Source: Gnetum montanum
Lineage: Eukaryota > Plantae > Gnetophyta
Assembly (NCBI GenBank): GCA_015680685.1
Contig: MNCI01001288.1
Coordinates: 1-64,000 of the forward strand
Direction of reading: 5' to 3'
Length of the DNA: 64,000 nt
Shown: one piece after another, positions 1-44,087 of the stretch
How the letters are laid out: every line of letters starts with the position of its first letter
How positions within the stretch are numbered: the stretch's first letter is position 1
Position numbers and translations under genes: made by a program
The notes under the pieces: generated by a model
What the model was told of the DNA's origin: nothing
Database searches by the model: none
The model's input: only the letters and a program-made list of their open reading frames with translations

Positions 1-1413
1 CACATCCCTAGAAGTAAGAATACCATTGCTGATGCACTTTCCACACTAGCCTTAAACATGACGCCTAAAATGTTTCATGCATTGCCTAGTTCTATAAACA
101 GTTGTGCCGAACCTATAATTAACACTCTAAATGAAGTACCTATAGCATCTGTTAGTACAACACATGTAATAGAATGGTATGATGACGTAAAAGAGTACCT
201 TCTAAAAGGCGAACCTCCACAACACTTGACAAATGCTCAAAAGGATGCCGTACGAAAACGTTCCCACCAATACACATTAATAGGTAACACTTTGTGTCGT
301 AAATCATATCAAGGTATTTTGCTAACGTGCGTTAGTAGCACTGATGGTCAAACGATTGTAGAACAAATCCACGAAGGACTTTGTGGAGGGCACATGGCAC
401 CTAAAGTAATGGCAACAAAGATTAGGCATTTAGGCTATTACTAGCCACACATGGAATACGATTGCATCTCCAAAGTTAGAACATGTGACATCTGCCAAAA
501 GCATGGTAATCTGATACATGTGCCACCTAATGAATTGCATATTGCACAAATCACGTGGCCATTCCAAAAATGGGGTTTAGACTTAATTGGACCAATAACT
601 CCATCATCTTCAATAGGCCATAGCTTCATTATCACTGCAACTGAATATTTGACAAAAAGGGTGGAAGCTATTCCTCTTAGAAAGACCACATCAAAACATG
701 TTTGCACCTTTATAATGGAAAATATTATAATCCATTTTGGTATTCCAATGACCATTGTTATCGACAATGGACCACAATTCAGCAGCACAGATACCAAAAG
801 CTTTTGTGAAATTCTGGGCATCAAACATGTGTTTTCATCACCTTACTACCCACAGAGCAACGGTCAAGTGGAGGCTACAAATAAAACTATCATCATGGTG
901 CTCAAAAAGATGCTGAATCAGAGCAAGAAATGATGGCATGAACAATTAGTCTACGCATTGTGAGCTTATAGAATGACACATCGAACATCCACAGGTAAAA
1001 CTCCATATAGTCTTGTATACAGATCTGAAGCTGTTTTACCTTTAGAATTGCAGGTTCCCTCATTGCGGATAACTCTCTCCAGTCTCCTTGATGAAAGTTA
1101 AAACAATGAATTGTGCATTGCTGACCTCGACAAAGTAGAGGAGGAATGTATATGGACTCTTGATCAAATTGAATGGTACCAGAAATAGCAGAGACAAAGG
1201 CACAAGCACGATCTCCACAAACGCCTGATCAAAGAAGGAGATCTAGTCCTTAAGGCCGTCCGAGAACATCCAAATAAATTCTCAGCCAACTGGGAAGGGC
1301 CTTATTTAGTCATCAAGGCATACAATAATGGAGCATTTAAACTTGCTGATATGGACGGAAACGAGTTCGCCGATCCTACCAACCACTTGTACTTGAAGAA
1401 GTACTACGTCTGA
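1..1413 (+). pseudogene. pol C-terminus: RNase H end, integrase zinc finger, rve core and C-terminal GP(Y/F) region
   Basis: One frame (+1) with in-frame stops, e.g. at 442, 931 and 961. Motifs IHEGLCGGH..CDICQKH, WGLDLIGP, IDNGPQF, YPQSNGQVE, NWEGPY; ends LKKYYV*. Confidence 0.95.
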
Positions 1414-1431
1414 CAAACTTGAGGTACGTCG

Positions 1432-1653
1432 TAGTCCTGGATCATGACTTAAAACTGATACCACAAAATAGTCCTGGATCATGATTTAAAACTGATACCA
1501 TAGAATAGTCCTGGATCATGACTTAAAACTGATACCATAGAACAGTCCTGGATCATGACTTAAAACTGATACCATAGAGTAGTCCTGGATCATGACTTAA
1601 AACTGGTACCACAGAATAGTCCTAGATCATGACTTGAAACTGATACCACAGAG
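1432..1653 (+). repeat. Tandem array, 6 x 37 bp (TAGTCCTGGATCATGACTTAAAACTGATACCATAGAA)
   Basis: Units start at 1432, 1469, 1506, 1543, 1580 and 1617, just after the pol stop. Confidence 0.95.
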
Positions 1654-1870
1654 TTTTGTTTGGTATGACACTAAACTGCTACATTCGTCCACCATGACAT
1701 GAAACTAGCATTCAGAGTCCACTAAGACTATAAACTAGTTTGCCTCTTCATAGTCCGCTATGACTATAAACTAGCAATGCACCATCTGCTACAACGCTAA
1801 ACTAGCACCATCCAAGGGGTTATGACATGAAACTAACCCACGATAGTCCGCTAAGACTATAAACTGGTGA
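1654..1870 (+). repeat. Degenerate continuation of the array: about 7 copies of an ATGAC-N3-AAACT core with unrelated spacers
   Basis: Cores near 1664, 1694, 1724, 1760, 1791, 1822 and 1853 (period about 30-36 bp). Confidence 0.8.
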
Positions 1871-2992
1871 CATCATCGATGTCCAGGAAAAACTTGAAAA
1901 GCTCTATTGTTGCAATTGGTTGTTCCTATTCCACAGAGACTTGTTGCATGATTCATCCCATGGGGCCTAATGAAACTGATGCTGTTCATGATTCTGTTTG
2001 CTTTGAAAGTTGCACATGGTGACTCCATCTCCTTATTTAAAGTGTTTAGCTGACTGTTTCATTTGTGGTTTTCTTGTCTTCTTGGAGTTGTTTTTGCAGG
2101 ATGACACTTCTGAGGCATTCATGCATAGATGCACTTCATCATGATGATAAGGTATCACATTTTTCCTGACACATGCGACTGGTTTAATCAATCAATTCAT
2201 AAGTACATTCCTGACTCCCGATGCATCCCCTATCTCCCTATCATGCTCCCCTTAGCCTATTCAATTACACTCCCCTGATACATTCTGCTCACCTCGAAAC
2301 TCTTGATACACTATTGCACATTGTAACTCTCTAAGCAGTTGCAACGCAAAATATGATACACAATACATGATGCAAAATGCAAGTGTTCATACACAAGCAC
2401 AGCAAAAAAAGCAAGCTCTTTCAAAAAAAAAGAAAAAAAAAGAGAACAAACAAAAAGGTCAAAAAGCAAAATGCACAGAAAAGGTCTTCATGACCCCATT
2501 GATATCATAAACAAAAGACTATTGGCCATTCTCATACAAGCCCTAGGCGAGAAGACAATTGTCTTGAAAAATAGTTACACTTGTGTCTCAAAGAGACCAT
2601 GTTACACATCATTATGTGGCTTTGGCTGTTTACAACGGGCCCCGCAAATACTCTATAAGAGTCCCGTTTCTCCAAAGAACGCACTTCCTATGTTTTGGCT
2701 CCAAGTCTGCTGAACATTAGCTATGGACGAGGACCAAAATACAGCTCATTTGCATGAGAGCACTCATCTCCCACAAATCCCAGCAGTAATCATAGCCCTT
2801 AACCTCCTAGCTTCCCTGGTTATAACAAATCCCTTGCATCTTGAACCACATTCCCTCAATCCCATGTACTTTTTGAAAATGGTGCTATAATATCTAGCCA
2901 AAGGCTAATGGTTAATGTTTGGTGCTTTGTTGCTCATAGTGTTTTGCACTTCTTTGTCGACGCCTCTCCGATAGATTCCTCCAAACGTCAAC

Positions 2993-3001
2993 AAAGAGGG
3001 G
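2993..3001 (+). other. Polypurine tract
   Basis: AAAGAGGGG followed by CCAA and TG at 3006. Confidence 0.7.
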
Positions 3002-3100
3002 CCAATGAAATACCACTAATTTCAGCCTAGCACTTTGAATTGAAAATGACTCAAGCCCTTTCAAGCATTCGGAAAATTATCCAGATCATACACAGGGGAT

Positions 3101-3416
3101 CACTACGCACTGGTGCAAGAAGAGGAGTTTATTAGGAATCTTAAAGGCCCCAAGGACATGAAGGATTTTTTTGTTTTATGCTGTGTTTTCAAGAAAAATG
3201 GATTCCATGTAAAAGATGATGGGGACGTGAGCAAACCAATTCCAGATTGCATTCTTGCTTTGGTCAGCAATAGCGTGACTGCTGAGGATTACTCCAAAGA
3301 AAGCTTATCTCCTAATAAAGATGATTGTGCTGAGACAAAGCCAACGTTGATAATAGAAACACCTAAAAGTATCAAAGATGTTTAAGAAGATATGTTCTCC
3401 CTAGAAGAATGGTAGG
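3101..3416 (+). pseudogene. Captured fragment of a NAC transcription factor (end of subdomain D, subdomain E and start of the C-terminal region)
   Basis: HYALVQEEEF...KDFFVLCCVFKKNG matches NAC D-x-FVLCRVFKKNG; the C for R is TGT, consistent with CGT deamination. Confidence 0.75.
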
Positions 3417-3673
3417 AAATCTGCATTTGCAAGTCCTCATTCTCCTTCGTCTTTACGCTGAGCAGGTTCTGGAGCTTGCCGATCTTGGGAACCAGAAACG
3501 CAGAAATGTCCAGCTTCCTCTTGTTCTGCTCTTACAGCATTAGAGCTCTGTGCCTGGCCACCATTTTCGAGATCTCAGCCAAGCCCAACCACGTTTCCAC
3601 GTCCTGCTAAAATGCGTGCAACACCCGAAGGCGCAAGGCAGGTGAAGCATGCGTCAATGTCGCAGAGAGTCAC
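3412..3673 (-). pseudogene. Captured fragment of a type I (M-gamma-like) MADS-box gene, antisense
   Basis: Minus strand reads TLCDIDACFTCLAP (MADS domain end), then after one frameshift DVETWLGLAEISKMVARHRALML*EQNKRKLDISAFLVPKIGKLQNLLSVKTKENEDLQM, resembling the AGL80/PHE1-type EVWP..V..F..EQ.KK....FL...I.K.....KEN region. Confidence 0.75.
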
Positions 3674-4204
3674 GCATGCCTAGATCCAAATTCCAGAAGC
3701 CTGTGCATGGTTGACGGAGGTTTTCGAAGGTGCGGTAGTAGAGAGAGAGACTGTCTATATTCATGCATGTGCATGAGATGATGTAAAGACAAAAGAATCA
3801 TCAAGCCAGGCGAGTTCGAAGGAGCCACTACCTTGCGTGATGGCGTATATCAGTAGCTTCTTTTGGCAGGCCGTGCCTGTACAAATCATTTTCACAGATA
3901 AAAATGACAAGCACATGAGCAAGTTTACTGACACGTGTGAGAATGCGGAACAAAGCTTGCAGGGCTCCTCCATAGGCTATGAAATGTTCCGACTCGCTGT
4001 TGCAGGAGCTATAGTTCCAGATTTTGTTCGAGGCAGTCACAGGCGAGTTTCAGCAACAGAAAACCAATGTGCCTGTACCCAGTGGCAGAGATTTCTCAAT
4101 GGTGGCAATTGCTGGAGCAAGCAGACACCATCAGCACCAAAAATGGATGCCCTTTTCTATGCATCATAGACATTGCCAAAGCCAAGGGTTCCCTAGTGAA
4201 TGTT

Positions 4205-4622
4205 GAGTCGGGGGTGTCGGAGGCAGAGCAACGGTGCGGTCGAAGTTGGCAGCCGGCCCAGCTTGTAAAGCAACAATCATGGTCGAGCGATAGCAAGGTG
4301 CAATGGTAGCTACGTAAGAGTAAGAACTTGACTGATGAGGACCTGGACGAGCTCCGTGGATGTATCGACCTTGGCTTCGGCTTCGACCTCCGTAAACAGC
4401 ATCCTGATTGCCACCTCTACGACATCCTCCCTGCCCTCGACCTCTACTATGCCGTCAACCACCACTTCTTCAACAATAGCTTCAATTTCAATTCCAATCC
4501 CAATCTAAAGTTCTCCGGCACCACCGTCGCCGTTGACAACGAGAGCTCCTCCTCCTGCTGCGGTTGCCCTGATGACTCTGACAATTCCACTTCCCCCCGT
4601 ATCGCGGATCATCTCCAGCCTA
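4205..4622 (+). pseudogene. Captured fragment of a DUF1685 family gene
   Basis: LVKQQSWSSD..W*LRKSKNLTDEDLDELRGCIDLGFGF...LYDILPALDLYYAVN in one frame with a single stop at 4307; RIISS (cf. WRISSPG) after a frameshift. Confidence 0.9.
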
Positions 4623-5272
4623 GATTATTCTAGGTTCCTGGCATTCATGGGTGCAAGGGTGTTCCAGGCCACAATGATGTTGGCTGCTACTGAGCTGATG
4701 AAAATAATCCTGGTCTCCGTAGATCCCGCTGCATCGTGGCATCATGCATTGCGCAGGGTTTGGAGTAGCTCTGTCAGCGGTTGCATCTGAGACAGTGCTT
4801 GCTCTGTCTTTCTCTGGGACACACTCTTCGCCAACGACATATGTAACCATGCCAAATTTTTGGAATTGGTTTAGACATCGATTTAGGATTTAAAATTTAT
4901 GAATGTTCATAGTTCAGAAAACTGGGACGTTGAATTTATTTTAATCAAAACAGAGATTTTATTAGTGGGAGATGTTGAAATTATACATACATGTAATCTT
5001 TCAAGCGGGCCGGAACCGGAGCTAATCTTCCTAAGATTTCTTTAAATTTTTATCGTTGGAGGGATTGTTTTTCTAATTTGTTTATATCTTCATGGGCTTG
5101 AATGACCCACAAATTGTAAAATACATTGAATCTGGTCAAAGAAGGCAAATTGCCAACACACATCCAACTCGTGCCAACTATTCATGGGACACATGTCACT
5201 AGATCTATTTTCCTCTTATCTCCCAACCATTGATTCCATTCTTGAAAACCATAGCCAAACCCTAGCCCAACC

Positions 5273-5281
5273 CTATAAATA
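5273..5281 (+). promoter_or_regulatory. LTR TATA box
   Basis: CTATAAATA followed by a purine-rich R-like region. Confidence 0.6.
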
Positions 5282-8200
5282 CCCTATCAGTTCACATAAA
5301 CAAGAGGGTAGCAAGAGAGAAGGCAAGGAGGAAAGGAGAAGAAGAAGGAGATTGGAGGAGGCAAAGATTGGAGAGATTGACAATTTTGAAGTAAGACAGA
5401 ACTTGCAATCCTTGGGCGCTTGGCAAATATGATTGTTGGCTTCCAAATATTTTCTCACATTCATCCCATTTCATCGTTACATCATCGTGTCATATAATTC
5501 TGGGGCTAGGTGTTTGACTTGCCATCCACACATGTGCAACTATGCTTTGACCGGTGCATATTCCTGTTTGAACAATACAATACAGTCTCATTATTGCCTC
5601 CCATTTACATTTGTTTAGTTCTGTTTATGCTTTACAAATATAACTTTGTTTATGCTTTATTCTTAATTTAGTACGCTTTATTTACATTTCGTATCGTTGT
5701 TTACATTCTGTTTACATCCTGTTTATGATAACCCCAGCGCTAGCCGTAGCTTACGCTCAGGGAAGTCCTTGGTTGATTTGTGTGCAAACCATCCAAGGCA
5801 CTCTACCTTCGTTTACTTTTCCAGCTTGCCCTCGGGTGAAGGCAGGGTCAGCTGTGGCTGCCCGACGATCTCTCGGTGTCTTTTTCCTTTCTAGCCTTAC
5901 ACCGACAATTTAGGTTAGTACACTTTGGTTGACATGTGTGAACATGTATTTGCTTGTGTTTGGTATAGGCCTAACTTTACTTTTCTATTTTTTTAGGTTT
6001 GTAATTGATAACATTAGTTTTGTATTAGTTTCTTGGATATCATTTTGGATTGTTAGTGGTCCAATGTCTTGATGTAATTTTTGGATATTATATTATTTTA
6101 TATCATTGTTATAATAATGTTTTGAATATTGCGTATAATTTTGGCTTGAGTATTAGGAGCAATGAATTGTTATTTCTTAGTGAACATGTTAGGTTTCCTA
6201 TGCAAGGGCTATTGATATTGCACTTTTATATTTAACCTTTTTCTAATTTTTGTGCTCCTTTGCACCTATTATTCGGATACCTACTACTTTGTTTATTAAT
6301 TTTTTTTGCCATCCTAACCATTTTTATTATGTTATGATTTACTTTTCTAAGTAATACCTTTCTAACCTAAGTTTAGATCAGGAGGTGCTACAATGCCATA
6401 CTCTTCCAAGCTCAGGACATGGAGACCATTGACAAAAGATACATCAGATAACCTCAAGGATAGGAATTTGTAGATTTGGTCCAATGTAATCACATTGCCT
6501 CCTATGAACCAACCATCCTTGGACATACAAAAGAATGACTAGCATCAGAATCAAAACTAAAAAGCTTAAAATCGTACTTTCTACATTTAATAGAATGTTG
6601 GGTTGCATGTCCACTGGCTAGTCAATGAGAGTGTATATACGACCCTAGGTCCTAGGACTTGCACCACTAGTCAGATTATCTTTTGACTTGCCACCTTATT
6701 GGGAACCACCATTGCTTGAATGCTACAGAGAACTAGACCTCTTATGATCCTATTGGCCATAAATAAAATAGTTGGGGCACTCCCTTTTGAGATGTCCAAC
6801 CTTTGCATAAATGAAGCAAGATGAAGGACCATGAATGGTTCCACCACCTATAGAATGTTGTTGCTTGAAAATTTTCTAGTGAGAATGTGTTCCATTGTGT
6901 CTCTAGTTAGGATTTATCATCTTCATGTTGTATACCTTGGAGTCTATGTGGTCCATGTGGCTAGGTTCATTTTTGTGCACCAAAAAACATTGAAAAAATA
7001 ATGTGAAAATTAAGTGTGTAAAAACAAAGTAGTGGGTAGTTCATGTGTTTAATATCTTGTTGTGTTGATAACATTGTGGAAGTAAAGATGCTCAAGTGGT
7101 TTTAGTGGCATTTATGACCATTCGTTGTGGAGAGGTGGAGTGCTCATTCATGAGCCTCAATGATTAGTGGAGTGATGGCCTTCATTGCCCAATCCCTTTA
7201 ACTTGTATAAATTGGTGCTCCATTTTGTTGCTAGAGCTAAGAGAGGCATAATTCTTTTGAAATTTTTGTGTGTTTTTCATCTCCATTGTTGTGTTGAAGT
7301 TCCATTAAGTTCAATTCGCTAGTCCTCTTTCTCACATTCTCATAATGAAAAGTTTATAATGTTGAAGATCCTCATAGTTGCTCACATTCTCACACTTTAG
7401 TTCTCATTCTTAGATTGAAGTTTACAACTCCTCATCCAACTCACATTCTTTCTATTTCCTCTCATTTTCTCAATTATCTTAACACACTTACATAAATTTC
7501 TCACATTTCTTAGTATCAAGTGTTTTAGGGGTTTTTGCAAGTTTGAATGATTTTAGTTGATTAATGAAGTGTTTTGGTATTTTCCTTTAATTTAAGCCTC
7601 AATGATCATGTTTAGAGGCCATATGATTTGTTTTCATACTTGTTAGGAAGGTTGAAGTCTATATCTATGTCTAGATCTAAGTCAAAATTTCTCATTTGCA
7701 CTATTCTATGTTTTTCTACAATCCCATGACCTCACCATGACTTCACCATGATCCATGATGAATGCATTTTAAAAGTTTTTGTAGGTCACAACTTGTGGTT
7801 AGATATTTTGTAGACCATAACTCATGACTTTCTTTTAATTTATCATTTTGATCACCACGACTCATAAATGACCTATGATCTATATTTGAAGTATAAGAAA
7901 GGTACAAGAGATTTAGAATGGCTATCACGACTTGACCATAACTCATGATCAACTCATGGTTTACACAATGGATTTTTCTTTTGTTTTACAAGATTACAAC
8001 CTGTGAAAAAACAATACGATCACATCATGACCTAATCACAACCTATGGTCAAACACCATGACCTATGGTGAAATTCAACAACTCATGATTTAACATCATG
8101 ATTGAGCTTTGACTCATGGTAATGCTCGTGGTTCAAAAATTTGTAAAATTTGAGGTTGAAAGTTCAAAGATAGAAAAATCTTGAGGATCTTATTCCATTG

Positions 8201-8697
8201 CACAACTCTAACATTATTGACTATTCCTACTAAACTTGGTTCACTTAGGCCCACTTGACTTGCCCTTAAAAGGATGAATTCTCTTTTGAAAACAATCATG
8301 ACATGCTACCTTGACTTGTTGATTGCACTCTAGATTCACTGTATGAACATGAACATTTTCATACATCTTTAGGTAATGAGGAAGCATGTGTTTATTAATG
8401 AAAATGTATACTCCATAGATGAAGCACTTAGTTCAAGCCACATCATTTTTCTAAATATGAGGTACATACATATTCAACTTAGATAATTTGGTATCATACT
8501 TTGGAATGATCTTGGATGGGTTTAGGATTCATGACCAGCTTGCTATGCCTAACATTTGCATTCTTGCCTACCCAACATCCTCATCTATCACCTGCTGTTG
8601 CTAAACATAAACTACAGTCCATCAAAGTGTTGACAAATCTACATTTTGACATCAAGTTGTAACAGCTTTTCACCTAACCTAAGAAAGAGAACATTAT

Positions 8698-9678
8698 TGA
8701 TGAATTGTGGTTTGTCAGGTGCTTATATCAGACCCTTGATATCAAACCCTTGTTAACTAGGTGCTGATATCAGACCCTTATTAACTAGGTGCTGATATTA
8801 GACCCTTATTAACTAGGTGCTGATATTGGACCTCTGTTATCAAACCCTTGATTTTTGATTAGTCTTGATATCGAACCCCCGATATCGAACCCTCGATATT
8901 GGGTATCGCGGCCTGGCTAGTGATATTAGATACGCGATATCGTGGTTTCTGTGTGAGCCTATAAATACAAAATTGGGTGCATGGGAAAGTCATAGAAAGT
9001 TAGTGTTAGAGTAGGATATTTTTGTTAGTTTTTCCTCTCAACCCTTTCCCCAGTGCATGCCCACAGTGTGATGATTGTAATTGTATAGAACCTTTATTCG
9101 AGTGTGACCTACTTGGACATGCACATGATCGACAATAAAGATCGAGATTACTTCATCATTGCAGCATTCACTTAGTTTTAATTGTTATTTATTACTTTCT
9201 TAATTAATATTTCTCTACCCTCATCTCTTATCCCTATTATTACATGCAAAATGAGTACGACTAAATCACGAGCTTATAAGTGTGACTACTTGGTATCCCA
9301 GTAGTGTACCTAGGACATGCGGTTGGTAATCTCAGTAGTAGTACATGAGGTCCAAAATGTGTACGGATGATTAAGGACGGATGCTCATCGCACTTAGGCT
9401 AGCTTAGATTCTCTTCCCCCATTCTCTCTTAGCTTAATTAAAGTTATTTTCCATTGCCTCTAGGAGTAGCACTAGTTTAGGACCACATCATACACCTCAC
9501 TTTGGACTAAACCATACATGACAAAGCAAATACTAGTCCAGGTGGGAAGACAACGAACTGCGATCAACGAGTAACTATCTAGATACCACAACTAGTCCGT
9601 TTGCAAAATTCAACCAGATCGTGCATGAACACTCGTATTCGTATGGTTGAGTGTAGGGGTACCTCCTCCACAACATCA
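8698..9678 (+). repeat. E1 5' LTR (981 bp)
   Basis: Direct repeat of 14041-14928; GATATC cluster then CTATAAATA near 8959. Confidence 0.95.
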
Positions 9679-14040: not shown

Positions 14041-14928
14041 TGATGAATCCTGGTTTGTCAGGTGCTGATATCAGACCCTTGTTAACCAAGTGTTGATATT
14101 GGACCCCTGATATCTGATGAGTCCCGATATCAGACCCTTGATATCGGGTACACGATATCGCGTCTTGGCTAGCAATATTAGATACACGATATCGTGGTAA
14201 ATGTGTGAGCCTATAAATACAAAATTGGATGCATGGGAAAGTCATAGGAAGTTAGTGTTAGAGTAGGATCTTTTTGTCAGTTTTTTCCTCTCAACCCTTT
14301 CCCTAGTGCATGCCCCTAGTGTGATGATTGTAATTGTACGGAACCTTTATTTGAGTGTGATGTATGTGGACATGCACATGACTGACAATAAAGATTGAGA
14401 TTACTTCATCATTGCAGCATTCACTTAGTTTTAATTGTTATTTATTGATTTCTTAATTAATATTTCTCTACCCTCATCTCCTATCCCTATTATTACACAC
14501 GGAATGAGTACGACTTAATCACAAGCATTTAAGTGTGACTACTTGGTATCCTAGTAGCATACCTAGGACATGTGCTTGGTAATCCCAGTAGTAGTACGTG
14601 AGGTCTAAGATGTGTATAGATGATTAAGGACGGATGCTCATCGCACTTAGGCTAGCTTAGATTCTCTTCCCCCATTCTCTCTTAGCTTAATTAAAGTTAT
14701 TTTCCATTGCCTCTAGGAGTAGCACTAGTTTAGGACCTATCATACACCTCACTCTAGACTAAACCATATGTGACAAAGTAAATACTAGTCCAGGTGGGAA
14801 GATAGCGAACTACAATCAATGAGTAACTATCTAGATACCACAACTAGTCCACCTGCGGAATTCGACCGGATCGTGCTTGAACACTTGTATTTGTATGGTT
14901 AAGTGTAGGGGTACCTCGCCACTCATCA
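14041..14928 (+). repeat. E1 3' LTR (888 bp)
   Basis: Direct repeat of 8698-9678. Confidence 0.95.
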
Positions 14929-17324
14929 ATTATGTATAGTCAAATTCCTAAGAAGCACATGGGTATGGGAAGAAACACTATGGCTAAAATAAAAAAAATA
15001 CTAGTGAAGCATGATAAATCATATTAACATGACCAAATAAAAACATCGATCAAGCATGTTCATATAAAATGCACCAATCTCATAAAGGAAATAATTGCAA
15101 ATTAATTAAACATACTTAATCCAGGATCCATGAATATAAAATATGCCATTTATTAAGATCCATTAATATCCAGCAAGCTAGAATCCAAGGAAAAAATTAC
15201 ATAATACATCAACTCTATGCATGAAAAAATCCAATATCCATAATCATAGGAATGTAAAACAATCTCTACTGTATTAAGGAAAATATATCAAAATCATAAC
15301 CATGAATCATCTTAGCTAATTCTATGATTCTCTAACTTCTTCTAGCCCTGGTGACTTTAAAATAAAAGGGAGTTACTATAATTGAATAGGAAACATTGGC
15401 ACTTCCTCTTGATCAACTAAGGACAAGCACCATGGATGAGAGCTAGGCATCAAAATTTTGACTTACAAACACATGTTAGTATTCAATGCACATCATACAA
15501 GCATCATGTATCTCACACTTCCATGTAATCAAGAAAACATAACATATAACCAACCATCCTCCCCAACCATCAACCAACCACACATAAGGAGGCTAGCATG
15601 CATCACACTCAGTGCGAAATGTGGTATTGTTGACATGTATATTTAGCCAATAATCATTTATCAAACTACCATATGCATGGATTTATTAATTTTTCTTAAC
15701 TATCAAACAATCATTAATCAAAATTGGTGCTAAAAGTGTTAAACATCCCTTCTAATGTTTTGAAGGTAAAAGGAACTAGTGGAGGAATGAACACTCCCTC
15801 TTTCTTGTAGAATGGAGTCCATGATAAGAGCCTTACTAATGCACCCTAGTAGGGGTTAGAGAAACCACTATAGGGTGCCCATCACTAATCAATTTCTCAA
15901 CTTAGTGCTAGCTATCATCAAACACAACGATACATCAAAGGATCATATCATCACAAAACCAACGTTGATGGTGGAGGATAGCACATACTAAACACAATCG
16001 AGTCCACATGAATAGAACCCCCATGGCTTAATCCAATGCACAATAAAATTAGGTATACAAACTAGACTAAGTATAAACCATTAGTCAATTCATACTAAGA
16101 ACCCAAAACTCATCTTCAATGGCTTAGATTATATAAAAACCAAGAAAACAATAATACAAGAGAGCATGACCTTGCTATGACACCACCATGACCCATGGCC
16201 ATGCTTAGATTCCAAACATCAAAAGAAAATTAGCATAATGATAGAGATAATAATGTATCATGACTAGACCATGACCCATGGTATACATAGAAAATCAAAT
16301 GTTTCAAGAAACCAAAGATGACATTTTTTAGTCTCAAGACTCACCATGACTTGACCATGATGAGTGGCGAGGTACCCCTACACTCAACCATATGAATACG
16401 AGCATTACATGTGCGATCCCGTCGAACTCCGCAGAAGGACTAGTTGTGGTATCTAGACAGTTAGCCTTAGGTCACAGTTCGTTGTCTTCCCACCTAGACT
16501 AGTATTAACTTTGTCACATATGGTTTAGTCTAGAGTGAGGTGTATGATGTGTTCTTTAATCTAATGCTACTGCTGAAGGCAATGGAAGATAATATTAACT
16601 AAGCTAAGAGAGAAAGGGTGAGAGAGAATCTAACTAGCCTAAGTGCGATGAGCATCCGTTCCTTGATTATCCGTACACATCTTGGACTTCGTGCATGACT
16701 ACCATTGGGATTACCAAGTGTAGGTCCTAGGTACACTACTAGGTTACCAAGTAGTCACACTTAAATGCTCGTAATCAAGTCGTACTCATTCCGTGTTTTA
16801 ACATGAGTTTAAGGGTGAGAAGAGATTAACTAGGAAAGCAGTAAATAACAACTAATTAAATGATTAAACTAAGTGAATGCTGCAATGATGAAGCAATCTC
16901 GATCTTTATTGCTGGTCATGTGCATGTCCAAGTACGTCACACTCAAATACAATCACCACACTACGGGCATACACTGGGAGGAAAAGGGTTGAGAGAAAGA
17001 AATTAAAACACTTAAACTAAAACTGACTTACTTCCTACTTTTTTACTTTTGATAACTGACTCCTCTTATTTATAGATGAGGAGACAGACTATGATATCGC
17101 GTATGCAATATCACGGTTGGGCTACGATATCACGTACGCGATATCGTGATCGCCCAAATGATGACTCATCATACCCCCATGACTGAATGAAAACTCATCC
17201 TTGAGTTACAGTGATTACACAGTGGATAGGTATGGGATTATTGGATGGTGAAAATGGGGTTATGCCGCAGTGTAGAATGAAGACAAAACAAAGATACAAC
17301 ATAAAGAATGTTCTACAACTACAA

Positions 17325-23527: not shown

Positions 23528-26500
23528 GGTTGTGAAATTGTGTGTGAATTTATATGTGACTTTTTATAATTATTTTTTTTGTAAAAGATATATCGTTAAG
23601 TCCTATACAATGACCTTGTATGATATAACTAATCTAGATAACTAACACCATCCCCAGCAATGGCACCAATGATGAGTGGCGAGGTACCCCTACACTCAAC
23701 CATACGAATACGAGTGTTACACATGCGATCCGGTCAAACTCCGCAGGCAGACTAGTTGTGGTATCTAGACAGTTAGCCTTAGGTCACAGTTTGTTGTCTT
23801 CCCACTTGGACTAGTATTAACTTTGTCATGTATGGTTTAGTCCATAGTGAGGTGTATGATGTGTTCTCTAATCTAATGCTACTCCTGAAGGCAATGGAAG
23901 ATAATATTAACTAAGCTAAGAGAGAAAGGGTGAGAGAGAATCTAACTAGCCTAAGTGTGATGAGCATCCGTTTCTTGATTATCCGTACACATCTTGGACT
24001 TCGTGCATGACTACCATTGGGATTACCAAGCATAGATCTTAGGTATGCTACTGGGTTACCAAGTAGTCACACTTAAATGCTTGTAATCAGGTCGTACTCA
24101 TTCCGCGTTTTAACATGATTTTAAGGGTGAGAAGAGATTAACTAGGAAATTAGTAAATAAAAACTAATTAAATGATTAAACTAAGTGAATGCTGCAATGA
24201 TGAAGTAATCTCGATCTTTATTGTCGGTCATGTGCATGTCCAAGTACATCACACTCGAATAAAGGATGTCGTACAATTACAATCACCACACTATGGGCAT
24301 ACACTGGGAGGAAAAGGGTTGAGAGAAAGAAATTAAAACACTTAAACTAAAACTGACTTACTTCCTACTTTTTTACTTTTGATAACTGACTCCTCTTATT
24401 TATAGATGAGGAGACATACTACAATATCGCGTATGTGATATCGTGGTTAGGCTGCGATATTGCGGACGCGTATCGCAGTTGCCCAAATGACAACTCATCA
24501 GACCACAACTTGTGATTATGTGATCAAGACTTGACCATGACTTATGATTAAGCTTGACACATATACCTTAACTTGTAGTGAACTCATGGTTATGGCCAAA
24601 ATGCTAGTTTGTCTAAAATCTAGCTTAAACTAATGCCTAGATGTTTTGAGATCATTGAATGATCAAGCCAACAATTCCAAAATGGTGTAATGCTTAGCTA
24701 TGAGCTGCTAAATTGAAGGAGAAATTCTTGCAACCCAAAATGAAAATAATAGAAACCTCAATCAGCATAAAAAGATAGAACCTTAAGAACAAAACACAAA
24801 CTACTTACTATTACAAAAAGCCCAATGTAATAATTGAGAATGCTATCCATCATTACTCAAAATCCACATGGCCACAATAATTGCTAATTGCAAATTTAGT
24901 ACAAAACTCTCATAATTACATAATATTATTGCTCACAATAAAGACGTGCATAAAAGACATGGTTGAAATTATAAATAAAAATTGTACATCGCTGCCCATA
25001 AATATGATAACTCAACTAATTACATTTATCATATATTATATAGAAAGCCAAAGTTTCATAAAACCCATTTCCTACTAGAAACACATTAACTTGTTGAAAT
25101 AGTGAAATAAAAGAAAAGGCCAAGATGGACACATGCACAACTACACAACAAATCATGCACTCACATGAACACATGAAATCATAAGCACATGAGCACCACC
25201 ATGAGTCTCCAATCTAGTAGAGCTTCCCCATCTAGTTGATGGATGCTAGCAATGACCAATGGAAATGGAGTATGAGTTTTTAGTAACAAAAGTATGTCAA
25301 ACCTAACTTGAAACCAAACTTTCTCTTTCTAAAAGAAAACTCAAGAAAAATCCAATCTAATTCATAATGTCATCTTATGTAAATCTCTTAATAAAACCAA
25401 TAAAAATACTAGACTCACCATTTCATAAAATTAAGTGATAAAATATTAACCGTTCAAACTCTCAAATGTAATTGCAAATATTGATCCAAAAAACATCAAC
25501 TAAAACTATTTACAAATATAAAACATGACTAACAACTGTCACTAGGCACAAAACCCACAAAACTAGTAACTCCTACAAATAATAAAGGACTCTAACCAAG
25601 CTAAACACTATACCACATGGTACACAACACACTAGTGTTAACCATGAATTGCCAAGGTACATAGCATATAAAGCACTCTTCCAACACATGTAACTAAGGT
25701 TGCCGAACTATACCCATGCCATACCGATACCCATAACACATATATAGCATAAGCGTACATAACACACTACTCCATAGGTTACGAGTGTAGTGAGTATGCC
25801 TCATGAAATCATATAAGCAACATTACCAACATGACACATACACATGCAACCACAGCAAACACAAGCAATAACATGAGATATTATTCTCCTAGAAGAGCTA
25901 AGAAGCATTCTTATTCTAATGCATCTAGCCCTAAGCTCCACTTTGAAGATAAGGACGATGGCTCGAGTATTGAAGTTGAAGCTCCTCTACAAGCCTACAT
26001 ATCCTCTTGTCACATTGCACAAAGGAATCAAGGTCATGTAATTCTTTAGTGATGGTTGTGATAGCATGGAACCTGTGAGAATCTCCACACTCCTTTGACC
26101 TCCATTTTGGAGGGAAATAACTTTCGATCCATCAACAAGGCATGTTTTCCTATACTCTCCCCCACTTTAAAGAAGAGACATTCTTAGAGACTAAGTCTTT
26201 GTTTGTATGCTTTGCCAAATATGAAGAGCCATATGGATATTGAGGGTATTGAGCAACTCAAAGCCCATCCAACAATTATAGATAATAAGGTTTAATGACT
26301 AGGTTCATCGATCCTAAAGCACGAATGTTAAACTAAACTTGACATCTAATTAGTCAAACAAATGCTCAGGAAACCTAGGTTAAGGAAGAAAAGGCTTGAC
26401 CTCTTTCATGCAAATGGTACCAACCTTTCTACTTGGAGTGAGACTCGTGTAAAATGCAAACCATTTTCCTACACTTGCAGGGATACAAATGTGTAGTCTT

Positions 26501-29975: not shown

Positions 29976-32900
29976 TGATACGTGGAGAGGTACACCTACG
30001 TCCAACCATACGAATCACAAGCGTTCATGCACGATCCGGTCAAATTTCATGGATGGGACTAGTTGTGCATCTAAATCATTATGCCTTCATAGTTTGCTAT
30101 CTTCCCACTTAGACTAGTGGTAGCTTTGTCACATATGGTTTAGTCCAAAGTGAGGCATATGATGATTGATGTTGTTCAACCCTAAGCTATTCCTAATAAT
30201 GATAAAGAAATTACTTGTTTAATCTAATTAACAATGGAAAGTAAAGTCTAGACTAGCCTACATGTGATGAGTGTCCATTCCTAGCTTGCCATACAAATCT
30301 TGAACCCACGTATCCACGACTGGGATTACCAAGTGCTATGTTGCTAGGCAAACCAAACAATAACGTTGCTGGGGTTACCAAGTGAGTACATGTTTATGCT
30401 TGAAACTGGTTGCCCTCATTTCGCCAATTCATTAACATGCATGAAAATGTCAATATTAACTAAGTACATGAAAAGTAAATTGCATGGAAAGTAAATATAA
30501 TTTAATTCAAAGTGCTATAATGAATAAGAATTAATTTTGATCTTATTATTGTTCATGGAATGTGTCCAAGTACATTGCCACTCGAATAAGACTCCATACA
30601 ACTAACTCAAATCTACTATGCGGGCACTCACTGACTGTTTTGTAAGATTACAAAATAAAATTGCAAGAGTTTAGCTACTCTATCGACTAACTTATGAGAA
30701 AAAATCATACCCAAACCATGTACCCCAGCACTATATTTATAGGCTGACACACATGCCATGATATTGGATATTCGACATCGGTTCTGGGCCCCAATATCGG
30801 GTATCCAATATCGAAGCCACGCAAAACATGGTTCATCATACCCCCATGACTGAATGAAAACTCGTTCTCAAGTGAACAATAGGGGGAACAAGTCCCTTAC
30901 ATAATATTGGGAAGGTATGGGATTATTGACTGACATGTAAACTACTAACTGACTTTGAGTGCCACATTATAAAATTTTATTTGAGTGGATGCATAAAAAA
31001 TGATAGAGTGACAAAAAGACTGGATAAACATTGAAGATTACAAAATTTACAAAGGTCTTCAAGAATCTACTAAAGATGATTCTTCTTGTTGCCGCTAGTG
31101 GTGGTAGACTTTTAACCTTGATTATTATGTCAATGCTTCTTTGGTTATGCAGAGCATTCTTGAAGGATGGACTAAAAGTGCTTCTCATCGTTCCATGGAT
31201 CTACCAACTTGCGAAGCTTGAGCTGCTATCTTGTATGTGCTACGATTTTTCCATGGGCATATCCTCCGTTGTCTCCCTCTTGGCTTCATTTTTGTGCTTG
31301 ATAAAAGACCTTCTTCCTTAGGCGTTTCTTTTACCATCACCTATAGTCGTCAAAGGATCAACATTAGTTTTGGTAAATTTTTCCTTAATAATAAACCCTT
31401 TTTTGGATCCCTTAGTTTGCATTCAAGCACAAGGTGATGACAACAAACTATGCACAAGGCTATGAGGTAACTCAAATCATCAAGTTCTCATTATTTTGAT
31501 CAATTACTATTAGTTACCATGATGTTCGAAAATAGGATGTTAGAAAAATTTCAAAGCAGACATTCCTAGCCCCCATGACTAATAAGCGTAACTTTAGAAG
31601 GAAACAAGTTTTTGAACAATTGAAACCAAAGGTCTAATTCAGAAGATGACCAAGAAATATTAATGGATATGGAAATAGAAAAGTAGGAAAAATTAATGAA
31701 ACAGATGAGAAGTAATCCCAAAATCATGCATAAATTCAGAGAAACCATCACTGATGTTCTGGAAGATGTGAAGGTTAGTTTAAAGCCATGATCAACAAAA
31801 GTTATGCGAGTGGGTCCTCCTCAAAGCAGGCTCTTGCCATAATGCTCTTGCATAACCACTTCTATAAATGTCTATGGGCACCCGAGAAGTTAAATGTAGA
31901 TCTTGCCATTGTTTCGAACAACGCACAACTGCCGTGGTTGGGATGTTGCACTATGCTACACAAAACCAAAAGGCTTGTAATTGCATGCAATAGTGAGGTG
32001 AATAATGAAATGAGAAGGGATTGCAGAGATTAGCATGTAAGGTACTTGACCATGTCCACAATAGGTTCTTGTGACAAGTGTGATTAAAATGATTAACATA
32101 CGTATCCATCCAAGTTCAGACCAAGTACATACCATGAATAGTGACCTCACATTGATGTGTTCCTCCTGCCAACCACCATGAGTCCGCAAACACCACAAAG
32201 AACAATCATCAATTCAAAAAGAGAAGAAAAGAGAAGAAGAAAGAAAGGGCCTTGGTTAGAGAGGTGCCTTCAAGCATGGGTAACATGTCTTTCCAACCCC
32301 ATAACCAGTGTTTGTAGCCCATTATTGTGTGTAAAGGATGTGCTTTGAATTCCCATTATTGTTTATTATTTTTTCTTTTTGTCTTTTTCCATTTTTTTCT
32401 TTTCTTTTTTTTTCTCTATCTTTTTTGGATGGGAACCACACCATGCAAAGACAAAGCTTCCTTTTTATTGGTTGACGACAAAGTGATGATACATTCCAAG
32501 AGGAGTTATAAACCACATGAAGGAAGTTAAGAAGAGAACCCAACAAGTTCCCTTGAGGTCATACCCTTTGCCATTCCCNNNNNNNNNNNNNNNNNNNNNN
32601 NNNNNNNNNNNNNATGACTTGGTAATATTATTAACAAAAACATAAAATACATTCATGAAACATAAAGAGAATGACTCAAGAAAGGAGAAAAATATAAAGA
32701 AAAGAAAAATATTTAAAAATGAAAAACATATGAAGAATCAAAAAATTCTAGAACTAATAAGCAAATCAATTACTTCCATGCATCTTTGAAACAGTTTTAT
32801 ATTCTCATTTTCAAGCCACTGGGTGTGTTCTGATTTAGTGGCTACTACGTAGACTAGCTTTTGCTCACACACTTGCTTTTGAAGTTTATGGTGGGTCAGT

Positions 32901-35900
32901 ATAGGGATTGTGTTAATATTTTGAACTTTTGGCCCACAATTGCATCCCTTATCATTATTGGTGATTCATGAATTCTTTTCTCTATTTACAATGATAGGTT
33001 TATCGTTTATTTCTTGTGTTAGAGTGGTAATGGGTGTTGACTTTTGTGTATGATTAGGAAACAGTGGTTGTGGAAAGGGAGGCATTGCACTAGATTGGCA
33101 TGGTGTTAGTTTGGATAATGTGGTTGGTCCATCAGTGTTTTGCTTCTACCTGCGGCCTTTCCTAAAGAAGGGATGTTTTCGAGTTTACAGTAGGGACCTA
33201 CCAGTATTGACATGTTTATGCACATTTGCAGCACAAGTGGCATTCGTTTGTTGATGTTGTGAGGTTGAACCTTCTTGTATTGTTGGAGGTGACATATGAT
33301 AGAGGTATGAGAATATTGAGGATATGATGTAGGATGAGAGGTGCGAGGTGGTGATCTCATATAAGATTTTGCGGGATGATGATATTCAGGAGAGTGTTCA
33401 TAGTGATTTGAGGTAGAGGAAGTAGAACTAGTTTGGGAAATAGCTTGTTGAACATAATATCCATATGGGTTTAGTTGGTAGTAAGGGTAGGGCTAGTTTG
33501 ATGATGGCCTCCCCCACGACTGTGGGTTTTGCCACTGCAGTTGATAGTAGTTTTAAGGTTGCTAAGAAGTCCCACTAGGATAGTATGGTTGGTTGTAGGA
33601 CTATCTAAAATTACCTTGTGGAAAAGAAAATCTCCTATTGTACAAACTTTAGATTTAATGCCCCTACCCAATACTCATGTAGATGCAACAAGACCAGGCA
33701 ATGGTCCTTCGGATGATCATATATGTAGATGTCACATCCATTATCTTCATCTGTGATTGAGTCTATAGCCTCACTTCCTTTAGCTATTTTTCTTGTTTGC
33801 TGAAAAGTGTTCCTAGTTGTTTCTTGGTTATGCTTCCTTCGTTTATTGTGATTGCTTGGTTCATTTTGCATTACCTTCTCCTCTACGATTTCTAGGCAAG
33901 TTTTAACTTTCTCATTCATCAATTCTGACATCTTATCCAACTTTGCTTCAAGCTCAACGAGAGAATTTTGTATTGGCAAGGTTCGTTGTAAAATCATCTC
34001 ATCAAGAGTTGCCTCTTTTTCCTCATCATAGATATGGACCCTTTTCTTTTTAAGGGTTGGATCCTAGTGTTTTCCTCTACGTTCTGTTGTTTACATAGCT
34101 CTCCTTCTTCTTTCGCCACTTGCCCAATTAGCCTTTGTATTTGATGGGCTTTTCATTCGTATAATTAACCTTGAGCATACATCCCAAGGATCTCTCTCTT
34201 TTCATTACGAAGCCCATCTATGATGTGGAAAAATTTCTCTTTTTGAGAGAAATCATGGCTAGGACATCTATGTAGTAGTGAATAGTATCTATCCAAGGCC
34301 ACTTCCAGGTGTTCATGATTTTCTTGCTTCCACTCTTAGATTTGTTTTCTTAGGTTGGAAACTCGTATAGGTTTTGTATTTTTCATTGAAAAGTTCTAGC
34401 ATTGTGGACCACTGGTGGATGGAACTTGGTTCCAACGATCTATACCAACTTTCAACTTCGTTGATTAGTGTACTAGGAAAGAGCTTAAGCTTTTGCCATC
34501 CACTTTCAATGTTGTATAAGGCACAAGCATCATGGAAGGCTTGTAGATGATGTTGTGGATCAGAATCATAACCTTCCTTGAACTTAGGGATATTATTCAT
34601 ATCAAGCTTGGGTAGAAGACTTTCCATGCAATGCCTGTGAGATATCTTAACTACCTCCCTAATCTACATTAGGATCTTAGTGGCCAACAAGGGTTCATCA
34701 TCATCAGGCATGTTGTGATGAAAATTTCTATTTCTATTCGTTTGATTGTGATGATCTTGTCTATGCTCATTGTGATGTCTTTGATTTTGCCCTTGGATTC
34801 GATTTCTATCTTTATCTTAACCTTGTAGTAAAGCTCTATCTCTATACCTACGTTCATCTTCGTCAGAACTAGACATTGAAGATGAAGAGGAAGATGATGA
34901 ACTAGGAGAATCATCATGGCTCCTATAGTTCACCTTTTGGTCCTTTGATTTATCTTTTCTAAGTTTTGAGAAGGACATAAGCCTTGAGGCCCTCCTTGAT
35001 CTAGGACTTACTCCATCTCTAGGATTTTCTACACCAATTGGATGTAGTCTTTAAGTGTAGTAAGGGTCTAAATGAGTGTAGGAAACCCTTGCTTAAGGTT
35101 GTTCACTTCAATTCTCTTTAGTATATATCCTATCATTTCTTCTACAAGTGTCCTCATCATATAATGCATTATTGATCCTATGTGAAGAAGACATGGTTTT
35201 ACTTGATAATGTGTGTGACTTAAAATATTAATATTTTTTAAAAGATAGATCATTAATACATTTGTAGCGATTATGTATAATATAACTAATCTAGATAACT
35301 AGCACCATCCTTAGCAACGACGCCAATGATGAGTGGCGAGGTACCCATACGCCCAACCATACGAATCACAAGCGTTCATGCATGATTCGGCTAAATTCCA
35401 TGGATGGGACTAGTTGTGCATCTAAATCATTATGTCTTGATTGTAATTCACTATCTTTCCACTTAGACTAGTGGTAGCTTTGTCACATATGGTTTAGTCT
35501 AAAGAGAGGCACATGATGATTGATGTTGTTTGGCCCTAAGCTATTCCTAATAATGATAAAGAAAGTACTTGTTTAATCTAATTAACAATGGAAAGTAATG
35601 TCTAGATGAGCCTACGAGCAATGAGTGTCTGTTCCCAGCTTGTTGTACACATCTTGAAACCACGTATTTCCTACTGAGATTACCAGTGCTATGTTGCTGG
35701 GCAAACCAAGCAATAACAGTGATGGAGATACTAAGCGAATACGTGTTTATGCTTGAAACTGGTTGTGCTCATTTCGCCAATTCATTAACATGCATGAAAA
35801 TGTAAATATTAACTAAGTACATGGAAAGTAAATCTAATCTAAGTCAAAGTGCTACAATAAATAAGAATCAATCTCGATCTCATTGTTGTTCACGGAATGT

Positions 35901-36064
35901 GTCCAAGTACATTGCCACTCGAATAAAAAATCATACCCAAACCATGCGCCCAAGCACTGTATTTATAGGCCAACACACATGCCATGATATCATATATCCA
36001 ACATTGCTTTTAGGCCCCGATATTGAATACCCGATATCGAAACCAGGCAAAACACGATTCCTCA
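29976..36064 (-). mobile_element. Complete non-autonomous Athila-like LTR retrotransposon (E3): gag plus ORF2 remnant, no pol
   Basis: LTRs 29976-30838 and 35327-36064, TSD CTATT (29971-29975 / 36065-36069), PBS 35308-35325, PPT at 30839-30847 (minus). Confidence 0.92.
32780..35194 (-). pseudogene. E3 gag
   Basis: PKFKEGYDSDPQHHLQAFHDAC..LKLFPSTLINEVESWY..F.EKY (ORF 34313-34627); degenerate knuckle CDIYIYDHPKDHC. Confidence 0.85.
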
Positions 36065-42756: not shown

Positions 42757-44087
42757 ATGATCATGGAAAAAATCAGCGGGAGTACAAAAGCAGGAGCAGG
42801 AGTGGGAGGAGTGGTGTCGATCGACAAGGATAGCGAAGGAGGGTCCAACAGCTACAGAGGTAGATTTGAGAACTTGAGCGTTGGTAGGGTGATTGGCGGA
42901 GAGGATGGGTCAGGAGGTGGTACTGGGGAGGAGATGGCAGAAAGAACGGAAGTGATGGGTTGGCATCCTAATGATAGGGGAATCAAAGCTTGTACACAAC
43001 ATGAGTGCACCATAAGATTGTAGGTTTGGTGCACCATGAGACTGTAGGTCCAACACCCACCTAATTAGGGCATGTAGACAATGGAACTCAGCCTTATTGG
43101 CAAATTTGTCTCCACGGGTCCTCGACCCAGGATGGACCTTATCAAGAAATGGGTAGCAACGAGCTAGGGTTTGATGGATGTTGACATTTGTAGTCTGTTA
43201 GAGGAGCTGTTGCTCTGTCTTTTGTTCAGCTACCGATCGAGATATAGTGCTTCTAGGGGGGTCTGTGGTTTTATGGTGCTTGGGGCTTGGTACTTACACC
43301 ATGGTGGCCTGGTGTGCACAAAGATGCTAACCTCTTCTCTCAGGCACTGGTGTGGATTTGGGTCTTAGGCATTCCTTGGGAGTTATGGATTGCTGATTTC
43401 TTAAAAATCCTAGCTAGATTCTTTGGAGAGTTCAACATGTTTGATTGGTTCATAGAATTGATGGAAAGAGTGGGATACACTCACTTTTGTGGATGGCGTT
43501 TGTTGGGCTCTAGGGACCTAGTTCAGGAAGTGGTCCTGGATCTTCCAATGGGGGAGGACACACCTTGTGTTGAATATGAGAATCTACCCACTAATAAGCC
43601 TTGTGCAGAGGACACGACTACAAGTGCGCATTGCACAATCTGTGGGAAGGCAAACCACATGGTAGCTGATTGTCATGTCTGTGCCAAAGCACCTGCACCT
43701 AAGAAGGGAGGGGACGGATGGAGGTTGGTAGGATTGCGGGGGTGGCTTGTGCCAAAGCCCGTGCATGCATTAGATCCTGGGCAACTCAATCCTCAAGAGT
43801 CACTTCCCCAAAAGCCCAACCTACAAATCCTGATAGGGTTGGGGGTGATCTCCCCTCATTGGGGGATTGGGTTGCAGTTGTGAGAGGTTCATTGGTTCCA
43901 AAGATGACAGAGATTTTGGAGGCTGCTGAGGCAACTCAAGGGGGATTTCAAATTTCACCGAAGCTTGGGAAGGTTGGTAGGCCTCACACTAGTGGCTTGG
44001 AGTAAAAAAACACAAATGGAGGTAGACATGGGATTATAGCCGACCTTGAAAGAGGTCTTCAAGAAACGATTGGCTAGTAAGCCATGA
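42757..44087 (+). pseudogene. LINE ORF1 (DUF4283 and zinc knuckle)
   Basis: LIGKFV, VLTPWWPG, VWIWVLGIPWELW, VEYENLP, CTICGKANHMVADC. Confidence 0.85.

Follow-up and report, generated by a model that had tools for sequence, protein, structure and literature searches.

The window analysed here, i.e. the whole stretch of 64,000 nucleotides from Gnetum montanum (contig MNCI01001288.1, positions 1 to 64,000), opens with the 3' part of an old Ty3/gypsy pol gene. This is followed on the same strand, about 1.6 kb beyond the pol stop, by a GC-richer block of 1.75 kb (3101-4850) which contains remnants of two or more unrelated host genes, including one for a NAC transcription factor and one for a DUF1685 protein (Table 1). 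Both fragments lie on the pol strand and both carry in-frame stops, with two or three unassigned blocks located between and after them. Transposable elements are densely nested across the window.

Table 1. Features of the retroelement and of the adjoining mosaic block (window positions).
Feature	Position	Strand	Basis or remarks
pol, 3' part	1-1410	+	Integrase zinc-finger region, rve core and C-terminal part; frame-1 translation
37-bp tandem repeat, ~8 copies	1396-1689	+	Repeat search; end of pol into start of tail
PPT-like AAAGAGGGG (2993-3001), 4-nt spacer and TG (3006)	2993-3007	+	LTR start according to the earlier note
Putative att-side start of the 3' LTR	3006-3100	+	95 bp, AT-rich; unique in the window
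NAC transcription factor fragment	3143-3412	+	Single homologue and tblastn; pseudogenised
GC-richer block, type I MADS piece of the earlier note	3417-3679	-	Six-frame translation; composition
Block without homologue	3680-4204		Holds a 130-codon stop-free frame, 3777-4166 (+)
DUF1685 gene fragment	4223-4618	+	Pfam, tblastn; one in-frame stop (4307); no start codon
GC-rich block without homologue	4623-4850		GC 0.50; holds a 76-codon antisense ORF, 4620-4850 (-)
AT-rich stretch, putative promoter-proximal U3	4851-5281	+	Ends in TATA motif
Putative R-U5	5282-5920	+	GC and CpG drop to an AT-rich, CpG-poor flank at ~5920-6000
Purine tract, 27 nt, uninterrupted	5325-5351	+	~45 nt past the TATA motif

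The assignment of the element comes from pol, whose integrase (rve) core at 451-930 (Pfam E-value 9.4e-15) lies at the 3' end of the gene, upstream of the block and sense to it, which places the element within the Ty3/gypsy group (Metaviridae). Frame 1 is kept throughout, interrupted by five premature in-frame stops (442, 931, 961, 1099 and 1186) before the natural stop at 1411. Within the window pol begins at the integrase, the positions of the reverse transcriptase, the RNase H and the 5' LTR being upstream of it. Concerning the lineage, the visible traits are tandem repeats in a long non-coding tail and the lack of a chromodomain-like end, a combination that Athila displays just as Tat/Ogre does. 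Tails several kb long are common in non-chromovirus gypsy lineages.

The block is heterogeneous in composition. GC content and observed/expected CpG amount to 0.39/0.35 in the NAC sub-block, 0.52/0.74 in 3417-3679 and 0.55/0.89 in the DUF1685 sub-block, the whole-window values being 0.39/0.36, while the CpG ratio of pol, 0.43, is well below that of the DUF1685 block. These sharp contrasts between sub-blocks fit a mosaic. Nonsense density is similar in the element and in the fragments (5 stops in 470 codons for pol, 2 in ~105 for NAC and 1 in ~135 for DUF1685), which fits a single shared age.

The NAC fragment was identified from a stop-free frame at 3050-3382 (+), which retrieved one match only among 1.84 billion representatives, with an E-value of 1.2e-5: a 618-aa transcript product of Welwitschia mirabilis (P0023), carrying the Pfam NAM domain at residues 7-133. 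When this protein was compared with the window by tblastn, its residues 139-226 aligned to 3143-3412 with 41% identity, crossing the 3383 stop and extending as far as an EEW motif directly before the stop at 3413, with a weak possible 5' extension to 3101. The fragment comprises the VLC..FKK strand, with which the NAC domain closes, and ~75 residues beyond it, collinear with the domain end of its significant homologue. Judged by these alignments the homology is statistically solid, and the predicted parent is a NAC factor of the membrane-tethered type. The fragment itself gives no Pfam NAM match because it holds just the last strand of the domain, and a metagenome scan retrieved no relatives of the ORF. 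The piece had been claimed at 3101-3416 (+), and the Welwitschia homology bears this out, the 5' boundary being good to ~40 bp. According to exon lengths of maize NAC genes (PMC4219692), intron 2 falls close to residue 139, where the alignment begins, possibly exactly at an exon border, which makes the NAC piece uninformative on splicing.

The DUF1685 fragment matches PF07939 with 76.5 bits, the gathering cut-off being 21 (E-value 1.4e-21), and tblastn with 22 homologues, all 22 of which contain this domain, covers 4223/4262-4618, corresponding to residues ~10-138 of proteins of 148 aa. The fragment therefore spans almost all of a short coding sequence, and by profile and alignment scores the homology is statistically solid, in agreement with the piece proposed earlier at 4205-4622 (+). 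Metagenome gene callers predict the homologues as full-length single ORFs (e.g. P0017), so that DUF1685 genes look intron-less, which makes the contiguity of this piece uninformative on an RNA route.

The remaining part of the block is less telling. The earlier note had read a type I MADS-box piece at 3412-3673 on the minus strand, a reading that requires one frameshift and has stops inside. Searches of frame pieces of 24-49 aa from this region gave no match to Pfam SRF-TF (PF00319) up to an E-value of 10 in any of them and no MADS match in the PDB, while two ESM Atlas searches returned coiled-coil look-alikes or nothing. The MADS identity is a resemblance noticed by eye and should be considered a lead. 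The mixed orientation attributed to the pieces depends on this lead, the NAC and DUF1685 pieces being both on the plus strand. Neither a homologue nor a Pfam family was found for the frame at 3777-4166 (+) or for the antisense ORF (4623-4889, -). Ten ORFs from the region gave no exact match (0/10) in the protein collection, and neither Rfam families nor tRNAs were detected in 1-9000. Overall, what stands of the proposed host-gene capture cassette is two pieces, NAC and DUF1685, beside a Ty3/gypsy element.

The location of the block with respect to the LTR was analyzed through the motifs around it. The layout described previously holds, with the block beginning 95 bp past the TG at 3006 and a strong TATA motif, TATAAATA, at 5274-5281, past the block and ahead of the putative R-U5, where it is a candidate promoter element. 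The PPT-like sequence with its TG (2993-3007) and the TATA (5274) flank the block in the arrangement predicted for a U3. Against a U3 position, PPT-like plus TG motifs occur 53 times on the plus strand of the 64-kb window, i.e. at a chance rate of ~0.8 per kb, which makes the one at 2993-3007, taken by itself, weak evidence for an LTR start, and a longer purine tract, which may be either leader sequence or a rival PPT, is found downstream of the block. By self-BLAST and nhmmer, neither the putative ends of the LTR nor the tail or the flank had a second copy within the window. For the 3' end of the LTR, a search for inverted termini yielded just a 6-bp ATTTCA at 5473, with no matching CA end. 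A comparison of the flanks of the block (2940-3110 with 4850-5120) for a duplication gave a score of 18, reached in 83 of 300 shuffles, and was therefore ascribed to chance.

Weighing these data, we infer that the mosaic most likely resides in the U3, and to the complete proposal, namely a mosaic in mid-U3 of the element's own 3' LTR acquired by template switching, we assign a probability of roughly one half. On one side the mosaic would adjoin a short 5' stretch retained for integration, and on the other an AT-rich promoter segment with the TATA box. Reverse transcriptase would have switched from the element RNA to co-packaged host mRNAs and then back, and the block thus inserted into the U3 would then have appeared in each of the two LTRs of the new copy. 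The fragments themselves would be passengers, since in-frame stops, the lack of a start codon and a decay rate like that of pol lead us to expect no protein function. We infer the RNA route of capture, as we would any small-RNA effect. An antisense MADS piece, if real, would have an orientation that simple minus-strand template switching leaves unexplained. It is also possible, though rather doubtful, that the block represents the variable middle of a 'Pack-LTR', a family whose U3 centre accepts stitched pieces of host mRNAs that are re-dealt at reverse transcription; the mosaic enclosed by the fixed att and promoter ends would then differ from one copy lineage to another.

An alternative, which we consider unlikely, is that the mosaic belongs to the internal non-coding tail that separates pol from the true PPT, with the 3' LTR starting downstream of it, e.g. 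after the tract at 5325-5351 or near 4976, in which case the block would not be duplicated by the LTRs. The internal tail is the classical site of genes captured by LTR retrotransposons, and in non-chromovirus gypsy lineages it is often several kb long. Furthermore, the 27-nt tract far exceeds the 9-nt run at 2993, and a stretch of purines followed by TGAAAT at ~4968-4981 resembles the site at 2993-3011, PPT-like plus TG motifs being frequent. However, a TATA box so close to a PPT, only 45 nt before it, would be in an unusual position. In addition, GC and CpG are LTR-like over 4851-~5920 and then drop, which fits a unit with its end near 5920, but an LTR starting at 5353 would be left with just ~570 bp.

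To a similar degree improbable is a separate mobile unit, made of the block with or without its flanks, which landed within or next to a 3'-truncated gypsy element unrelated to it, so that its adjacency to pol would be coincidental. This could be a solo unit of the 'Pack-LTR' type reaching from 3006 to ~5800-5920, or a gene-carrying transposon of the Helitron or CACTA type. The dense nesting of transposable elements and the contrast in CpG between the DUF1685 block and pol are in line with such an origin, as are several terminal look-alikes, although the latter do not rise above chance level. A CACTA-like pair (CACTAC at 3101 and TAGTG at 4963-4967) shares 5 bp and lacks a 3-bp target duplication. 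A Helitron-type pair (A/TC at 3099-3101 and CTAA/T at 5022-5026) has no hairpin before its CTRR and was also judged to be chance, and the GCCAA and TCCAA flanking 3006 and 5791, a 4/5 match for a target duplication, are expected by chance among ~200 CA sites. Inverted matches of 12-20 nt occur around the block at chance level, none of them bracketing it, and in the best inverted repeat, of 12 bp (3233-3244 and 4861-4872), one of the arms falls within the NAC coding piece. In the scan of 2900-6100 no Helitron 3' end, that is, a GC-rich hairpin ahead of a CTRR, was found on the plus strand, the sole Helitron-like site being a 5-bp stem on the minus strand, inside the block. The block hence has neither terminal inverted repeats with a target duplication nor Helitron ends of its own, which the earlier note had named as the signs of a secondary insertion, and the shared nonsense density of the fragments and pol also argues against a separate unit.

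A chance juxtaposition of ordinary decayed pseudogene remnants, or of filler DNA left by the repair of double-strand breaks, with a truncated retroelement, involving no capture by a transposable element at all, is very improbable: two pieces only are verified and three other blocks have no homologues, but two unrelated coding fragments within 1.5 kb, on the pol strand, without introns or flanking gene structure, are contained in a sharply bounded GC-rich block whose surroundings are transposable elements only.

The mid-U3 proposal can be compared with several known systems. In retroviruses, the part of the U3 that separates the att end from the promoter tolerates coding sequence that is accessory or derived from the host, as in MMTV sag, and acutely transforming retroviruses gain host sequence via read-through and template switching. 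In these viruses the sequence is expressed and functional, whereas here dead fragments are found, in a plant host. In plants, template switching is documented to have generated the chimeric LTRs of BARE-2, derived from BARE-1 and Wis-2, and of long Veju TRIMs, where, as proposed here, sequence from a co-packaged RNA enters the LTR region and is inherited by both LTRs (PMC13317346). The donors there, however, are other retroelements or sequence of unstated origin and not strings of host protein-coding mRNAs. Pack-MULEs, Pack-CACTA elements and gene-carrying Helitrons likewise hold serial mosaics of unrelated host-gene fragments between conserved ends, but the block described here has no terminal inverted repeats, target duplication, Helitron 5' TC or 3' hairpin-CTRR, and adjoins pol.

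Gene-fragment capture by LTR retrotransposons, including that of several fragments per element, is of an already published kind, and in maize Bs1, maize Sireviruses, the captures of rice and sorghum and those of gymnosperm giga-genomes the host coding fragments are pseudogenised too. Among Sireviruses with captures 15% carry at least two fragments, with unbiased orientation (10.1101/777037), and the corresponding figure for capturing transposable elements of vascular plants is 13.7% (PMC13477047), whereas in maize Baucom et al. found no LTR element with pieces from more than one gene (PMC2774510). Compared with the single-gene pieces of the latter, the present block contains at least two genes, perhaps five blocks, abutting one another. 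Published surveys tally captured fragments and do not describe their anatomy; they give no specific U3 location for them, whereas here a placement within the LTR is possible, and a full-text literature search found no description of U3-located gene fragments in plant retrotransposons. The ideas of siRNA cross-talk ('epigenetic conflict') and of shielding, both raised in the earlier note, have already been published as hypotheses for gene capture by transposable elements (10.1101/777037; PMC13477047).

On present evidence the outcome is an ordinary one, two dead pieces of host genes carried by the 3' non-coding portion of an old gypsy element. If the mosaic does lie in the U3, each retrotransposition would copy it twice and solo LTRs would retain it, so that one LTR family could spread thousands of regulatory-gene pieces across a giant genome. 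This would feed siRNA cross-talk with the donor genes, exon shuffling and pseudogene mis-annotation, and would give LTR retrotransposons a mode of capture comparable to those of Pack-MULEs and Helitrons.

As far as composition can show, the block at 3101-4850 is a mosaic, with GC climbing to 0.45-0.56 over its length and afterwards falling to 0.33-0.41 (see Table for its parts). Two of these parts could be assigned to host genes. For the NAC part, a search with the stop-free frame 3050-3382 among 1.84 billion representative proteins, unrestricted in length, gave a single match (E 1.2e-5). This is P0023, a protein of 618 aa encoded by a Welwitschia mirabilis transcript, whose NAM domain spans residues 7-133 and whose C-terminus carries a hydrophobic anchor. 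Such a relative hints at a gymnosperm, perhaps gnetophyte, source; a metagenome scan yielded no relative of this ORF. In tblastn, P0023 aligns to 3143-3412 with 41% identity, crossing an in-frame stop at 3383, and the last shared motif (ED.FS.EEW) stands directly 5' of the stop at 3413. Since the alignment spans residues 139-226 and ends before that stop, the piece is an internal coding fragment, consisting of the final NAC-domain strand and the beginning of the variable region. The DUF1685 piece is recognized by Pfam (PF07939, 76.5 bits, E 1.4e-21) and by 22 homologues aligning across 4223/4262-4618 (tblastn), the best length-matched of which are 47-62% identical (Typha, Tasmannia). It covers residues ~10-138 of 148-aa proteins, that is, nearly the entire small coding sequence, without a start codon and with a single in-frame stop at 4307. 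The NAC coordinates of the earlier note are accurate.

Features of the block and of the surrounding DNA
Feature	Position	Strand	GC	CpG o/e	Remarks
37-bp tandem repeat	1396-1689				6 register copies listed, ~8 units
NAC block	3101-3416	+	0.39	0.35	
Candidate MADS piece	3417-3679	-	0.52	0.74	
Block part	3680-4204		0.46	0.50	
DUF1685 block	4205-4622	+	0.55	0.89	
Block part	4623-4850		0.50	0.48	
TATA box	5274-5281				
Purine tract	5325-5351				27 nt, uninterrupted
Degenerate motif run	7700-8130				short ATGACC/ATGATC-like motifs; AT-rich, CpG-poor; between putative LTR and next element
LTR pair	8698-9665 / 14041-14917				88-91% identical, 5.25 kb apart, start TGTCAGGTGCTGATATCAGACCC; GATATC-rich ~28-bp repeats upstream of TATA at ~8960
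Same LTR family, inverted	16357-17140; 23669-24470				
LTR pair	29976-30838 / 35327-36064				81-90% identical, ~5.3 kb apart
ORF	43287-43880				partial DUF4283 match, E 8.5e-6, just below Pfam cut-off
GC-rich region	59400-62600	both	0.44-0.56		long overlapping open frames, longest 289 aa (61611-62480)

The type I MADS-box piece is a by-eye lead without support from any tool. It consists of a TLCDIDAC-like stretch followed, past a frameshift, by a coiled-coil-like stretch, reminiscent of the second half of a type I MADS box and of the part that follows the box. These candidate pieces gave no SRF-TF match in Pfam up to E 10, nothing in the PDB and generic coiled-coil families or nothing in the ESM Atlas, and at 24-49 aa they fall below the size accepted by the length-restricted protein search. 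The two verified fragments share the strand of pol; hence a mixed orientation of the block, as previously proposed, would come solely from this candidate. No homologues were obtained for the 130-codon open frame at 3777-4166 or for the antisense ORF region at 4623-4889, the other blocks matched no Pfam family in any frame, and an exact look-up found none of 10 ORFs of the region in the protein collection.

The window is TE-dense plant DNA (overall GC 0.39, CpG o/e 0.36) and starts inside the pol of a Ty3/gypsy element, whose frame 1 is open to reading from base 1 and reaches its natural stop at 1411 without frameshift. It encodes the zinc-finger region of the integrase, the rve core (Pfam E 9.4e-15) and a C-terminus typical of integrases, and its translation contains five premature in-frame stops. 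The 37-bp repeat sets in just 5' of the pol stop codon and extends into the non-coding tail, which continues for ~1.3 kb 3' of both. Nonsense density in the gene fragments (2 in ~105 and 1 in ~135 codons) is close to that of pol (5 in 470), which fits their having aged together with the element. Elsewhere, several elements located at 10-35 kb have internal regions that resemble one another in inverted orientation (71-83%), and the open frames of the GC-rich region belong to no Pfam family.

Our best reading, to which we give a probability of about one half, is that the mosaic occupies the U3 centre of the 3' LTR, having arisen by template switching and then been written into both LTRs. Reverse transcriptase would leave the element RNA for co-packaged host mRNAs and later return to it, and the switched product would be copied into both LTRs, so that the mosaic is flanked by 95 bp of att-side end and by a promoter segment of ~420 bp. 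That both verified fragments are in sense orientation agrees with this route, whose RNA step is itself a proposal. DUF1685 genes appear to be intron-less, since prokaryote-style gene calls yield full-length ORFs (e.g. P0017, a metagenomic homologue), and the contiguity of this piece is therefore uninformative on the route. Residue 139, at which the NAC alignment begins, is near the expected position of the conserved second NAC intron, judged from exon lengths in PMC4219692, so that splicing is not readable from the alignment.

Placement in U3 depends on where the LTR begins. The proposed start comprises a 9-nt purine run (at 2993), a 4-nt spacer and TG, a motif type occurring 53 times on the + strand of the window, so that one within the 1.6-kb tail is expected by chance. 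The purine tract ~45 nt 3' of the TATA box is far longer than that run and may be either leader sequence or the actual PPT; in the latter case the block would be internal, as in a capture into the internal tail with the LTR beginning 3' of the block, which we regard as unlikely. The drop of GC and CpG near 5920-6000 suggests a unit of ~2.9 kb; no CA end whose termini form a matching inverted pair could be singled out as the LTR 3' end, the 5' LTR lies upstream of the window, and no portion of 1480-8690 occurs again within the window.

That the block is instead a separate mobile unit adjoining a truncated element seems improbable. The earlier note had named TIRs/TSD or Helitron ends of its own, together with a 5' LTR and other copies lacking the cassette, as evidence against an LTR-borne cassette, and no sign of a secondary insertion was found: inverted repeats around the block are chance-level 12-20-mers, the sole perfect one (12 bp) having an arm within the NAC coding fragment, no GC-rich hairpin followed by CTRR occurs on the + strand, the flanks are not duplicated, and no tRNA or Rfam family is present. 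CACTA-like and A|TC...CTAA|T look-alike ends were rejected, with at most five shared bases and no target duplication. An origin without any TE-mediated capture is very improbable.

BARE-2 and Veju are documented cases of LTRs remodelled through template switching (PMC13317346). That plant LTR retrotransposons capture gene fragments is established. In maize, none of 425 elements with gene fragments combined pieces from two or more genes (PMC2774510), and 3% of 6,200 surveyed Sireviruses captured fragments, 15% of these holding at least two, with no orientation bias; siRNA cross-talk with donor genes was also examined there (10.1101/777037). Gymnosperm genomes contain ~400,000 captured fragments each, and across 23 vascular plants 13.7% of capturing TEs carry at least two (PMC13477047). 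A U3-specific mosaic is described neither in the last three studies nor in anything returned by full-text literature search.

It is possible, if doubtful, that the locus belongs to a family with U3 'Pack-LTR' mosaics, in which the U3 centre would accept stitched host-mRNA pieces that differ between copies while the ends stay fixed. With the fragments dead, an effect could arise only through RNA, hypothetically as siRNA cross-talk. What is demonstrable here adds one more case to a known kind of capture, on which a U3 'Pack-LTR', if the reading is true, would be a new variation.
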